NCBI GenBank assembly: GCA_047495785.1
Contig: JBLDXI010000041.1
Coordinates: 1-64,000 of the forward strand
DNA length: 64,000 nucleotides
Reading direction: 5' to 3'
DNA from: Lepidodermella squamata
Taxonomy: Eukaryota > Animalia > Gastrotricha
The position numbers were made by a program, and so were the translations under genes. Every line of letters begins with the position of its first letter. Within the stretch, counting starts at the first letter, position 1. The notes beneath the pieces are model-generated. The model did not search any database, had not been told where the DNA came from, and worked only from the letters and a program-made list of their open reading frames with translations. Of this stretch, positions 1 through 47,215 are shown one piece after another.

Positions 1-99
1 ACCCTAACCCTAACCCTAACCCTAACCCTAACCCTAACCCTAACCCTAACCCTAACCCTAACCCTAACCCTAACCCTAACCCTAACCCTAACCCAACCC
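1..99. repeat. Terminal telomeric array (CCCTAA)n, i.e. TTAGGG on the - strand
   Basis: The window starts with ~15 perfect TAACCC units and ends in a variant CAACCC. The C-rich strand on + fits a left chromosome end. Confidence 0.97.
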
Positions 100-326
100 G
101 ATCAATCGCTCTTCAACAGCACTATCTGTTAAACTTTGTTTTCAACATATAGTAAGTTTGAGGACACTAGTGTAAAACCCTTCATAACTTTTGCTTCAAC
201 GTTTGACGAATATTGAAGTAATTTGAAGTAATTTTTTTCAAAGTTATGAAACTGTTCCAAGGCAGTAGACTTATGTTGAAATGTTTACAATTTATTTATT
301 TCTAATTCTATCCTTTGTAATTTCCC

Positions 327-460
327 TGACTCCCCTGGGTCATGGTGAAATATTAATAATTTGCCTGACTCCCCTGGGTCATGGTAAAATAAATAATTTC
401 CCTGACTCCCCTGGGTCATGGTGAAATAAATTCAAACAGAAAATGACTCCCCTGGGTCAT
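327..460. repeat. Four copies of the quasi-palindrome TGACTCCCCTGGGTCAT at ~37-41 bp spacing
   Basis: Identical 17-mers start at 327, 366, 403 and 444. Confidence 0.9.
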
Positions 461-722
461 TCTTCTGATTGAATTGTATTCATTTTTTGAATACAAATTT
501 TGTCTGAGTTCCTTTGAGCCATTTGTCGGGAATTTTTTATCGGATCTCAGTATTATCGCGGAGTGGTTAGGAACACATAATTTTTGTGATGAAGAATTAT
601 CACAAACGTGAAAATGATGCTCATCTTGGATCCCTATGATGGAGTAATGGTAGGGCCCGGTTTGACTCTCGGTAAAACGAGAGGCCCCGGTTTGCAGCTC
701 GTCTGTATTAAACTATTACCAA

Positions 723-775
723 TAACCCTAACCCTAACCCTAACCCTAACCCTAACCCTAACCCTAACCCAACCC
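723..775. repeat. Internal telomeric tract (TAACCC)8 plus AACCC
   Basis: Read directly from the sequence. Confidence 0.95.
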
Positions 776-786
776 GATTCTACTAA

Positions 787-851
787 GAGGTTAAAGTTAC
801 TGATGAGCTACACTAGCCAAGTAGCGAAACCGGTCTGACGATGGCTACCTC
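787..851 (+). ncRNA. Type I hammerhead ribozyme with minimal palindromic stem III and a pseudoknot
   Basis: Core CTGATGA 800-806; stem II GCTAC/GTAGC 807-811/821-825; GAAA 826-829; stem III within ACCGGT; GTC cleavage triplet ending 835; stem I GTTA/TGAC plus GAGG/CCTC. Loop II TAGCCA (814-819) is complementary to TGGCTA (842-847). Confidence 0.88.
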
Positions 852-1162
852 AACTCGAGTAGAATCTATGCTTTAAAGTCATAAAGCATATTATTAACCT
901 TACCGTTAATATTATTGGATTAAATATCCATTCATACAAAACGTGTGCTTACCCACATGTTAAGAATTCAGAATTTTTGTATTCTCTATTCTAGTCCGTC
1001 GTGACTTATTCGGTATAGACCTAGTACTATCCGATCTACAACATTTCACCACTGATTCGACATTCTCTTGATCGGTTCTTGCGGAAATAGTGGTTGGGCC
1101 CGGCCAATTCGCTACGTACGAATTCCCGGTTTACAGCTCGTCTGTATTAAATCTAAAGAAAA

Positions 1163-1221
1163 AACCCTAACCCTAACCCTAACCCTAACCCTAACCCTAA
1201 CCCTAACCCTAACCCTAACCC
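1163..1221. repeat. Internal telomeric tract, ~10 TAACCC units, preceded by an A-rich run
   Basis: Read directly from the sequence. Confidence 0.95.
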
Positions 1222-1301
1222 CTTTTGTCATTCGAGCTCGTATTAGCACGGCCACCAACTGCGGTGGTCACACAGCACATGAAAATAATTTAGTTAAAAA
1301 T

Positions 1302-1778
1302 ATGTGCAAATTGTTTCCCTCAGATTCGCTCAACGCCGACGTCGTACAAGTCCGGGACCAGTGGGTCAACAAGGCCATCGGCGAACTCCGTACTCGTTCG
1401 GGGTACGCTCGCTCCGTAGCCGCCCACGCCGTGTACGACGACGCGTCAGATGCGTTCAGGGGCTGTGCCAACCCCGCCGAAACAGCCGACTACGCCGCCC
1501 GCGCGTTCAACAAGGCGTGTCGTCAAGGCAGCACCGTGCAAGCAATCCGTCAGATGCGCAATGTCAACTTGGGCGTGTCGAGGGAGAACTTTGTCACCGC
1601 ATGGAAAGCTGCGCTGTTCGCCATGAACGGCAAAAACCTGCGAGACAACATAGTCTGCGGGTGGCAAGTTTTGCTTGAACAGCTAGCTCAATTTGATGAA
1701 CCGAAGGACCGTAGTAACCCTACTAACCCTAACCCTAACCCTAACCCGGTATTCAATAAGAAACTAACCCAACCCTAA
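1302..1778 (+). other. GC-rich ORF fragment of unknown family between telomeric tracts
   Basis: The open frame MCKLFPSD...EPKDRS runs into telomeric repeats. It is visibly GC-richer than its flanks and has no recognisable motif. Confidence 0.3.
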
Positions 1779-1793
1779 CCCTAACCCTAACCC
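1715..1793. repeat. Two degenerate internal telomeric tracts separated by a 17-nt spacer
   Basis: TAACCC units at 1715-1747 and 1765-1793 with variants. The spacer is GGTATTCAATAAGAAAC. Confidence 0.9.
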
Positions 1794-2120
1794 CTGGTCG
1801 AGTTTTACACTTCCCCGTACAATGGGACACAAAAATGGTCGAGGAGTTAATATAATCTGTTACACCGGCAGATTTATTTTTCGCGACTACGGCAGGATAT
1901 TCGTTTTTAAATGAACACCTAATGTAGTGTTCGTTTTTTTTCCGTCTCATATATTCAACTGTTTTCGTTGGTAACATATCTTTTCGAATTGAAATAGGCA
2001 TTTATTTCCAATTGCAAATGCTCCATATAATTGCGCATATAGTTTATCCAAGAAAATAATCAGATTTTCAATTTTGCGGATTTAAAAATATTAGATCTAT
2101 AAGCATCGGGTATGGACGGC

Positions 2121-5100
2121 TCAAGCAACGGCTATCAGCGGTAATACAGTGTCTATGGCGAAACATCTTCTGATAGTAGAGTTATTTTCATCACCATCTC
2201 CTGCGACCCGCAGGATAGACTTCGACAATGTCTCTGCTGGTCGATTAAAGTTTTCGTCCAGGTAAATATGTCGGAAAAGGGTGTGAAACAGCTGAGCAGC
2301 CATGTAGTCTTCTGAAGATTCGCTCAACTCTACACAGGCGATCTAAATGAAGGTAAATTTGAAAAGCCGCTAGTTCGATAGCAAATATTTCTTTATACCA
2401 GGTGACTTGAGTTGATAGTGCGTCCACTCAGTCTTATCCTGCATGAAAAAACATGAAAAGTTATGTAACTGCATCTTGAATACTTCATGAAATATCGTTT
2501 GACTCACACTAATGATTTTACACTTCCCCGTTTCGCTACTGAGCGAACCTTCCAATTAATTTCAGATTTAGCCCAAAGCCGTGACGTTTTCATTCCTAAA
2601 ATGAGAAGCCAAGTAATACGAGCGAGAAAAATAAAGTTACCCTTATACCAGTCTTAGATTTTTCCTCTTTCCCATCGGCATGTGTTGTTTTCGCGAATAG
2701 CCAAAAGTCTAAAACCATTAATAATAATAATAATAATAATACAAAATTATATTGCACAAAAATGGCAATTTTACCGAGAAATCTTGCTAAGATGACACCG
2801 GGTTTTTTCCACCTGATTTCCTTCACATCCAGTACCACGTTGAGTGGTTCATTGACATCCATCGGGGACGAGGCAAATACGTAGCAGGTGAAGGAGAGTA
2901 GAGCAATAACCTGTCATGAAATTGCATTGAAGCGAATATAATAATTTAATAAGTTTATAATCATACCATGTTGCGTTTATCCCGACTGGATGAAAGCAGA
3001 GTTTTGTCGAAAGCCGCTGATGAATTTGATGAGCAAGGGAATGCAGCAAACGATCTCGCGTGGATCGGATGTTGGCCATTCTGTTGTTGAGGTTGCAAAA
3101 GCTGTTTCTCACGACGTACTACTTTGACACTTGGACATTCAACATCTGATATCCACTCTGGTTCAACTGGCACTAGGCTATTGACAAAGACGTGAAATGG
3201 CGGAAATCGTTGGTTTCGAGCAGCCGTCCGCTTTGACGAAGCCGACTGCGATTTGCGACGGCGAGTGTTCTGCCAAAGTGTATCGTCTGGATCGTCTTCG
3301 TCGTCATCCTCAATAGGACGATGACATAGCTGAAGCCGTAGCCAAATACTGTACGAGTGATTGACCAATTTGGAAAGACGAGGAAGTCTGATACCACTGA
3401 AAATTTCGTTTTCTTCCAGGGGCATCGGACCGTTGATTGTGTATTTTCTAGTTTAAAGATGTATAAACCGAAATGGTGTGAAATACAATGAAGGAATATT
3501 CACCTTTTAGCGTGAACACTACAGAACTTGTTAGCGACAATTAAACGTATCCTCCATTGCATGACGCTAGATTTGAGCGATGAATAAAAGTTCGCGGAAG
3601 CAGCCGTGTTATGAAGGCGACTGAAAAAAGATGCCACGGATAGTTAGTCCTATATTTACATTATTACAATGAGAGGCTCTATTCGTGGACGCGAATAGGG
3701 ATGTTATCGTTAACAAGATCTATATATTGCTATGTGCAACACGCGCCGTCTACCTCCTAACAGTGTTATTTTAGGGTTAAGATTAGTGGTCGTGTAGGAA
3801 CTCTCTCGCAACTAATAACTTGCCGATGAACTTACCGAAAGAAAATGGCTAGAACACAGTGTTTTTGATGCTCGATTAGTTGCATACGTACGGAGACAAT
3901 GCACCTCTGATAACATTCCCATTGACCTGAGGTGCGTCCGGCTACCGAGTTGCTGCTGTAACCAGAAACGGATTTGCCATCACTATTTAGTCTGAGATGC
4001 TAGTAATCTCGGGAGAAACGGATGGAAGAGCAACTTACTTGAGAAATTCGCCGTTTGTAATGGCTCCGGCTGCAGTTGCGGACAACTGTTGAGACTTGAC
4101 AGACGGCATTCCGTAACTATCGACAGCGTTAGTGCGGCGACTTGTCTCGGGTGCGATTATCTGTACAAGGTCATTTATGAGTTCAGTCGAAGAGCGCTTG
4201 ATGAGCTCGTTTGTTTGCAACGTGCCGTAGATAAGGTTGTCGAGAGACGATGGAATGCTGCCGCGGCGCCACGATGGTCTGCGATCGGCGGACATCGTCA
4301 ATCGTTCCGAGCGGTCAAGGTCGTTACTGGTTCCTGACGTTGGCAAACCACCATAAAACGAAGAAGATGACGGAACAGCGGCCGACTCGGTGCTCAGCAT
4401 TGTCATTAAGTTTGCGCCGCTCTTCCGACCGCTCGTCGCACCGGCGGTGGCACCTCCACCGGCGCCGCTGGCGTTGCTGGACCGCAGGTTTGTAAATGAG
4501 CCGCCCAGGCGCTGCTTGTCGCTGAGAAAAAAGCGAAACATGGTCAGTTTGTCGGTGAATCTGACGATGCAAATCAATATGGGTTTACGCTTGATGCGCT
4601 ATATCATTGCTTGCGTGCATTATTGCATTACAACTTAGCGTACTTAGTTTTTTCTCGCTTGAATTAGCCTCGTGCCGCGTAAAGTTTGATGATAATGGCG
4701 TGCGATGGCTGATTTTGCGCTCGTGATTTAAAGCTGGCATTTTTTATGGCGGGCCCAGATGGGCTAATCCGTAGGGATGTGTTTTTAAGCGAATTCTCGC
4801 CGGAAACTATACACACGCTTGCATTCATTTGTCCTAAAGGATTTGAAACGCGTTTATCACCAATAGGTTTGTACGCACATTTATCAATATCAAAAATATG
4901 AGATTACATGGTTGGAATGAGGAAGTTTGGCACCTTCTTCGGAACAATGACTCTTTCCTTGAGCGAAGTCGTGAGCTTGAACTGCTCGCATGTGCTACAC
5001 GGTCCGGCGCCAGGTGCATGGTTGTGGTGGTGCAGTTGGTGCGATAACAGGCTTCCGGAAGGTGTCTGGCTGACGTTTGTAAAACTTGCCAGTTTCTCAG

Positions 5101-46250: not shown

Positions 46251-46946
46251 ATGATCCGACTGATACTAAGTAACAGTTTGCCTATAGACGCGGGTATTTA
46301 CATTTAACTAATTTTTTCTGTACAAATGATTATTTATGATTTTGCATGAGTCTTTTATCGTTGAAATGACGATGTCGCACATGAGTGACTGCGGTAGTTC
46401 GAGACGTTTTGCGAAGTCGCGGAAGAACTTGGTGATGGTACCACGGGCTCCAACGAAGAGACCGATTACTTCGAGGGAAGTTAGATTGTATCTTTCCTTG
46501 AAGTATTCTGCGCAAGGCTCGTAGTGTGCCCGTTTTTCTTTGTCGACTTCCAGGGCTTGATCCGGGCTTTTTTCGAAGCGGATGGTAGGGTCCAAGATCC
46601 ACCCTTCGCTCGTGTTTTTATTGAAGGCGATAATGTCGACCCTTTTGAGGCCGTCATTTTCTGCGAGGCAGGAAACTTCCTCGTAGACTTCAAGGGTCTT
46701 GTTCTTACGCAAGGAGTCTGCGATCATAGTTCGCACTCTATGATGGCGGGCGTTGCGAAGCAGAGCACCGCGGGGGCAGAAACCAAGGACATGTGAGAGG
46801 GATTCATACTCGCAGTCGCAGTGGCGGCAGCGGGGTCCATCAAGGCTTCTTCCAGGCAGTGCACGAACCGCACAGGTGTCCGTCGTCATTTTGATCGCCG
46901 TAGTCCATTCGTTGACTGAGAGACCGGACTTGTTACTGATCCACTT
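46245..46946 (-). mobile_element. 5'-truncated RLE-type (R2/NeSL group) non-LTR retrotransposon
   Basis: ORF 46308-46946 has a CCHC knuckle (CRHC..ESLSHVLGFC), RHHRV, RVDIIAF..ILDPTIRFE and EKRAHY, followed by a short 3' UTR. Confidence 0.88.
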
Positions 46947-46949
46947 ACC

Positions 46950-47215
46950 TATCCTATCCTATGCAAATCGTTCACATCGAAGTCTCAACGCCTAAAAGTG
47001 TACAAAACCTACAATCTGTACGCTGAGGCTCACTTCCATCTTCGTTTTTTGATGAGCAAGCTATCGTGCACCAAGCAGTCCCACCTGTTAAGACACTTCA
47101 AGTGTTTTTATTTCTTCATTTAACTGTAGATTCTAATTCTTGTTGTGTGTTTTCTTTGTAATAGCCTGATGATAGTCCGCGCAAGGACCGAAACATCGCT
47201 TTCAAATAAAGTTGT
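46950..47215 (+). mobile_element. Penelope-like 3' end/pLTR remnant with degenerate minimal hammerhead
   Basis: CTGATGA 47166-47172, stem GTCC/GGAC, CGAAACATC, AGC/GCT stem I, AATAAA 47205-47210 and an upstream T-rich tract. Weak GIY-YIG-tail-like peptides (ILSYANRS, KPTICT) lie further upstream. Confidence 0.55.

Follow-up and report, generated by a model that had tools for sequence, protein, structure and literature searches.

A chain of segments with telomere repeats between them stands at one chromosome end of the gastrotrich Lepidodermella squamata, and it raises the question of how such a chain is built. The window (the whole stretch of DNA analyzed, 64,000 nucleotides) forms the left end of a chromosome from an animal whose genes are densely packed, among them those for STAM, AP3B1, and Argonaute; its STAM is about 44% identical to those of annotated animals and 65% identical to a metagenome protein. 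The first 1.8 kb consist of four units, U1 to U4, delimited by five co-oriented (CCCTAA)n tracts that are all C-rich on the positive strand (Table 1), as a first-pass annotation had proposed. CCCTAACCC and GGGTTAGGG were found nowhere in the 64 kb outside these tracts. All four units agree in polarity with published endonuclease-less Penelope-like elements (PLEs), again as proposed; that U3 is coding and that U4 is only 16 bp long went beyond the annotation.

On the inner side, the chain is about 230 bp away from the 3' end (near 2026) of the last host gene (2026-3100, negative strand), which is spliced, has introns of 53 to 69 nt, and is matched at 100% in an RNA-like run of 2015 (X2). A very deeply covered repeat lies just inside T4 at 1795-1911; it has other flanks in an independent DNA run (X1), and one of its 16-mers is found again at 2516.

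No contig from the short-read runs spans any telomere tract, so the order of the units depends on the assembly alone. This is compatible with the chain being an amplification or assembly chimera joined via telomere repeats, and the L. squamata assembly was made from multiple displacement amplification (PMC11660948). A chimera is nevertheless very improbable in our judgment: every unit has a biologically defined end, all units are co-oriented and were found in independent runs, and a matching ORF1-telomere junction occurs in two unrelated datasets, L005 and L007.

Table 1. Positions of the features of the chain in the window and of hammerheads in related elements
Feature	Position	Strand	Remarks
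Terminal telomere array T0	1-99	+	C-rich strand; last repeat is the variant CCCAA
U1	100-722	+	Non-coding, 36% GC; multi-variant family, diverged member in related species
Hairpin-forming repeat within U1	318-460	+	3-4 copies of 37-41 bp
U1 3' module	644-719	+	Closing stem 644-651/712-719
U1 module, alternative or pseudoknot pairing	653-656 with 697-700	+	GGGC with GCTC
U1 module, CCGG/CCGG stem	657-660/687-690	+	Encloses variable hairpin 666-683
U1 module, small hairpin	693-707	+	Loop of 5 nt
Telomere tract T1	723-775	+	CCCAA variant at its end
U2	776-1162	+	Non-coding; hammerhead at 5' end, shared module at 3' end
Type-I hammerhead	776-866	+	Core motif span 796-839; outer stem 776-784/858-866 starts exactly at junction
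Hammerhead inner stem	787-791/847-851	+	Next stem inside outer stem
Hammerhead stem I	796-799/836-839	+	Core bases 800-806 and 826-829
Hammerhead stem II	807-811/821-825	+	Loop II-bulge pseudoknot 814-819/842-847, 6 bp
Hammerhead stem III		+	Palindromic ACCGGT; predicted cut after C835
U2 3' module	1092-1153	+	Frame as in U1, different central hairpin 1106-1124
Telomere tract T2	1163-1222	+	C-rich
U3	1223-1722	+	5'-truncated stop-free ORF1 slice, about 165 codons, 55% GC
In-frame ORF1 telomere complement, attachment point	1716-1747	+	Codons N-P-T-N-P-N
Telomere tract T3	1723-1747	+	ORF1 telomere complement runs into T3
U4	1748-1763	+	16-bp stub, resembles last bases of U2 tail
Innermost telomere tract T4	1764-1794	+	Contains one CCCAA variant; 3' end of last host gene about 230 bp away
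Stem-II-less hammerheads of related elements	L002:943, L003:1100, L006:4204, L008:1241, L009:3246, L010:568, L011:3675

U3 and its autonomous relatives

U3 comprises a single stop-free frame, whose GC content of 55% is listed in Table 1. A search of 1.84 billion proteins returned four matches (E values of 2e-12 to 6e-7). The contigs of these matches, like those of related reverse transcriptases (RTs), are two-ORF elements in which ORF1 is followed by a Penelope-type RT. By sequence comparison, U3 is demonstrably a slice of ORF1 from an endonuclease-less PLE, and it is through these matches that the annotated source, an endonuclease-deficient PLE, is tied to the chain. In X1, the U3 contig extends upstream by 267 bases that match nothing in the chain and are most likely the absent start of ORF1; U3 is therefore 5'-truncated. 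The units had been annotated as non-autonomous cargo or truncated ends, and for U3 the truncation was borne out but not the cargo, since the element that U3 derives from is autonomous. The ORF1 domain (1224-1715) was predicted to be an all-helical bundle (pLDDT of 79) and had no match in Pfam, PDB, ESM Atlas, or Foldseek; a search with the ORF1 region returned the query itself alone.

The end of U3 reads N-P-T-N-P-N, and its relatives have N-P-N-P at the same alignment position. In L002, L003, L008, L009, and L010, the telomere complement TAACCCTA was found within ORF1 only, always in the same frame and at the exact point where U3 meets its telomere tract; L009 has two adjacent copies. The joint probability of the synonymous sites of TAACCCTA was 2.5e-7, given each gene's codon use and ignoring relatedness. 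A further element, L011, was obtained later as a test of the prediction and carried TAACCCTA in ORF1 as predicted. In another organism, two telomere tracts flank an equivalent ORF1 slice (L005:11-578; Logan SRR22038625), and in L007, also from another organism, ORF1 enters a telomere tract at the TAACCCTA motif. The tracts of L005 and L007 contain CCCAA variants as well.

The 20 related RTs showed 35-54% identity, and the complete ones (566-615 aa) have a conserved stop right after the thumb; these RTs were collected with a length filter, which may hide longer Athena RTs. None of the 20 has a GIY-YIG motif, compared with 31 of 51 outgroup proteins. Their nearest other relatives are GIY-YIG PLEs at about 30%, and the DKG motif, RVT_1, and DUF8422 were recognized. 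In a tree built by a quick method, with no Athena or Coprina references and with two short fragments left out, 18 RTs formed one long-branch group (SH-aLRT of 100) apart from endonuclease-bearing PLEs. The 64-kb window contains no RT, and an RT-profile scan of JGI metagenomes was blank.

Six whole relatives from metagenomes combine a hammerhead with ORF1, an RT lacking GIY-YIG, and an in-frame TAACCCTA. Whole elements are about 4.2-5 kb long, with no accessory ORFs seen, and four contigs (L003, L006, L008, and L011) are terminally redundant units of 4.3-5.1 kb. In every whole element, a hammerhead without stem II is found just upstream of ORF1. In these putative ribozymes, the two core boxes are separated by 4-6 unpaired bases and stem I is long; they are conserved across the clade. 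The source of U3 thus has the features of an endonuclease-less PLE, namely a Penelope-type RT and no GIY-YIG (both from the relatives), a hammerhead, and a telomere complement, and U3, L005, and L007 are all terminal, capped by telomere repeats, and oriented with the 5' end towards the tip.

Ends, ribozyme, and variants of U1 and U2

The annotation had U1 and U2 sharing an upstream junction and a 27-nt downstream motif around unrelated interiors. The junction, CCCAACCCGAT, occurs at 92 and 768 (coincidence roughly 1e-4), and both units start with GAT straight after the variant final repeat. The 27-nt motif is present twice, at 686-712 in U1 and 1125-1151 in U2 (BLAST E value of 2e-8; no matches in 100 shuffles), but the shared element proved longer, at about 70 nt. 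BLAST found no further significant similarity between the two units, whose interiors are indeed unrelated and non-coding. A weak 22-nt match (566-587 and 959-980; E value of 0.065) ends in AATTTTTGT and resembles an Sm-binding site.

The common 3' element, or module, has a closing stem and, in order, GGGC, a CCGG/CCGG stem around a variable hairpin, and a small hairpin whose loop is 5 nt long; an A-rich spacer and the telomere tract follow on its 3' side. Its central hairpin has three unrelated sequences, in U1, in U2, and in a run from a related species (X3), where the loop is C(UUCG)G. The G.U pairs of the module function on the C-rich strand only. Such interchangeable, covarying hairpins and one-strand G.U pairs point to selection on the C-rich-strand RNA. 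An Rfam search gave no family for the module, and the 27-nt motif was absent from JGI metagenomes. Likenesses of the module to twister, HDV-like, and hairpin ribozymes and to SRP-Alu were dropped, core motifs or a second hairpin being missing. The sequence of U4 is weakly similar to the final 16 bases of U2 (p about 0.004-0.008), which suggests that U4 is probably a 16-nt stub of a U2-type tail.

The hammerhead annotated on the C-rich strand was confirmed and placed at the distal (5') end of U2. Every core base and stems I to III are present, the outer stem has 9 bp, and the match to Rfam HH9 is below threshold (15 bits; E value of 0.18). With the full hammerhead descriptor, U2 was the sole match in the window and 0 of 1,000 shuffles matched; U1 has no hammerhead even when one core mismatch is allowed. 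The X3 flanks differ from those of U2 but again pair as stem I and as the stem that follows, and they again supply the pseudoknot partner; these compensatory changes were read from the loose ends of one contig. The ACCGGT of stem III is identical in L008, L010, and L011, and palindromic stem III is found in metazoan PLE hammerheads (PMC4209133). In U2, the telomere complement comes 363 nt after the hammerhead; in the whole elements, this distance is 821-989 nt. We infer from the sequence that U2 RNA would cleave itself and could form circles. The positive strand also bears, at 47161-47200, a degenerate motif that resembles a type-I hammerhead; its stem I is weak and its stem II has 4 bp.

U1, the hammerhead, and the module are represented by several distinct contigs in X1. 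The U1 contigs had depths of 278-428, as opposed to 34 for the unique flank; contig depth does not equal copy number, so the case for multiple copies relies on the distinct variants. One X1 contig pairs the hammerhead with a U1-type module, and elsewhere in X1 the 3' part of the module adjoins a third interior and a different tail. A copy of the internal U1 repeat is skipped in one run (joint 386->424), and a diverged copy of U1 exists in a related species. The U2 piece in the RNA-like run had low depth and was rearranged, and it is no demonstration of transcription. With these variant contigs from an independent run, U1, the hammerhead, and the module are not single-copy and invariant, a point on which the first-pass annotation had staked its proposal.

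The variant copies and the variable internal repeat would also fit a spread of the units as DNA in the manner of Y' or X elements: subtelomeric recombination or break-induced replication would have carried the units, telomerase would have healed the breaks, and only U3 would be a retro-relic. Excerpts of PMC7367193 state that interstitial telomere tracts promote breakage and recombination. We regard such a spread as quite improbable, since it leaves unexplained the intact ribozyme, the three swappable hairpins, including the C(UUCG)G loop, the one-strand G.U pairs, and the joining of the module to several unrelated interiors.

Comparison with known systems

Telomerase has the endonuclease-less Penelope-like RTs as its sister group; descriptions of endonuclease-less PLEs in animals come mainly from bdelloid rotifers. 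In these elements, a reverse-complement telomere stretch pairs with the G-overhang, the RT copies the RNA, and telomerase caps the product; they form head-to-tail chains with the 5' ends outward (PMC6431247, PMC8557442, PMC13159263). Judged by analogy, the chain operates like Athena, terminons, and Coprina.

Athena and terminons of bdelloid rotifers (PMC6431247, PMC8557442) likewise have an endonuclease-deficient Penelope-type RT, a hammerhead upstream of the telomere complement, 5' truncation by telomere repeats, and head-to-tail chains of equal polarity. In contrast, the host studied here has TTAGGG telomeres, the relatives measure 4.2-5 kb and show no accessory ORFs, whereas terminons reach 40 kb, and small non-coding passengers carry a structured 3' module of their own. 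The complement follows the hammerhead immediately in Athena (PMC6431247), whereas here it lies in frame in ORF1, 0.8-1 kb away. The annotated label "terminon-like" was therefore an overstatement: the relatives are two-ORF elements whose ribozyme is not adjacent to the complement, and no giant multi-ORF unit was found.

Coprina of fungi, for example Coprina-1_Alen (PMC13159263), is similar in being about 4.5 kb long, with two ORFs and an RT that has a thumb but no endonuclease, and in lying between TTAGGG-type tracts with its ORFs towards the centromere. It differs from the elements described here, which have an animal host, an ORF1 without database match, and a stem-II-less hammerhead; the likeness is one of anatomy.

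Animal non-LTR retrozymes (PMC7229834; bioRxiv 10.64898/2026.07.22.740005) are also short and non-coding, have a type-I hammerhead, and are presumed PLE passengers. They have been linked to endonuclease-bearing PLEs, in an analysis that endonuclease-less PLEs lay outside of (bioRxiv 10.64898/2026.07.22.740005). Retrozymes are homogeneous tandem repeats, each copy with a hammerhead, whereas the chain has single heterogeneous units between telomere tracts and one hammerhead in all: the combination of non-coding unit and type-I hammerhead is present in U2 and absent from U1.

The mechanism is already published, but the anatomy of the chain and the host group appear undescribed, according to a literature search with two primary Athena papers outside its coverage; the L. 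squamata genome paper (PMC11660948) does not mention telomeres or Penelope elements. New are a telomere complement that lies in frame and is conserved throughout an RT clade without a named member among the matches, and the small passengers with a covarying 3' module. A compact clade in TTAGGG animals, whose passengers measure 0.4-0.6 kb and whose telomere-pairing site is fixed at synonymous ORF1 positions, offers a small, testable substrate for RNA recognition and chromosome-end priming by a retroelement RT and makes the use of circular templates testable as well.

How the chain may have been built

We consider it likely that the whole chain was built by telomere-primed retrotransposition with the RT of an endonuclease-less PLE, with U1, U2, and U4 as passengers that were each re-capped by telomerase. 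The case for U3 alone as a product of such priming is much stronger. A C-rich-strand RNA would pair via CUAACCCUAAC with the G-rich 3' overhang of the chromosome, an endonuclease-less Penelope-like RT would copy the paired RNA outward, and telomerase would cap the new end, which would become the next target. Four rounds of extension would have taken place, with U4 the oldest and U1 the newest. U1, U2, and probably U4 would have moved as non-coding passengers that offer the structured 3' module, which we hypothesize to be an RT-binding element, and then the same telomere complement. Since the pairing stretch is inside ORF1, 0.8-1 kb downstream of the hammerhead, linear or aborted copying would leave ORF1 stubs like U3; whole elements would need a template that is circular or longer than one unit. 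Several results count against this reading: U1 and U2 have no sequence similarity to the autonomous elements, U1 contains no hammerhead, the order of the units depends on the assembly, and no RNA fold comparable to the module was found upstream of the ORF1 motif (z of -0.9 to +0.8).

The fixed 5' junction of U1 and U2 is unexpected from random truncation followed by telomerase and also counts against telomere-primed retrotransposition as the best explanation of the chain. It is conceivable, if doubtful, that U1 and U2 are telomere-targeted circular RNAs with a short telomere tract in the circle, whose 3' module recruits the RT and whose helper RTs are a third endonuclease-less Penelope clade. 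The RT would prime at the tract, go round the circle once, and end in the tract again. The recruiting module is a junction that bears a hairpin (4-5 bp, 5-nt loop), and the helper clade would hide its telomere complement in ORF1 codons. One lap would explain why both units have the identical CCCAACCCGAT junction and why the 5' half of the hammerhead is retained, and it would supply telomerase with a ready seed; as the best account of the fixed junction and the retained half, we put it forward tentatively. Because CCCAA repeats also occur in the tracts of L005 and L007, this variant by itself may be a stutter that arises commonly, and the argument for a circle is the weaker for it.

The main rival explanation for U1 and U2 is that they have MoTeR-type 5' ends. 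They would be non-autonomous partners of an endonuclease-bearing, telomere-targeting non-LTR element of the MoTeR1/MoTeR2 or TRAS type, inserted within the array, and U3 would have been added independently by a PLE. MoTeR1 and MoTeR2 of Magnaporthe, as described in excerpts of PMC7367193, resemble the chain in polarity, in their TTAGGG-separated head-to-tail arrays, and in the variant repeats at a fixed 5' end; their non-coding partner has only the ends in common, as U1 and U2 have CCCAACCCGAT and the 3' module. Upstream of the tracts lie ATTAAA and A-rich bases, which fit such an origin as well. However, a palindromic stem III in a type-I hammerhead is a PLE or retrozyme signature that fits the RT clade of U3, and the sole coding piece of the chain is a PLE ORF1. 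MoTeR1 is SLACS-like and has a restriction-like endonuclease, the excerpts of PMC7367193 describe no hammerhead for it, and none of MoTeR1 was detected in the chain. The module matched neither the retrieved loci nor the LINE fragment with a restriction-like endonuclease in the window. We therefore judge an origin of U1 and U2 from such an element unlikely. The LINE fragment, which has no Pfam match, lies at 46308-46889 on the negative strand and was recognized by eye as a 5'-truncated non-LTR C-terminus that has the motif of a restriction-like endonuclease as well as a CCHC finger.
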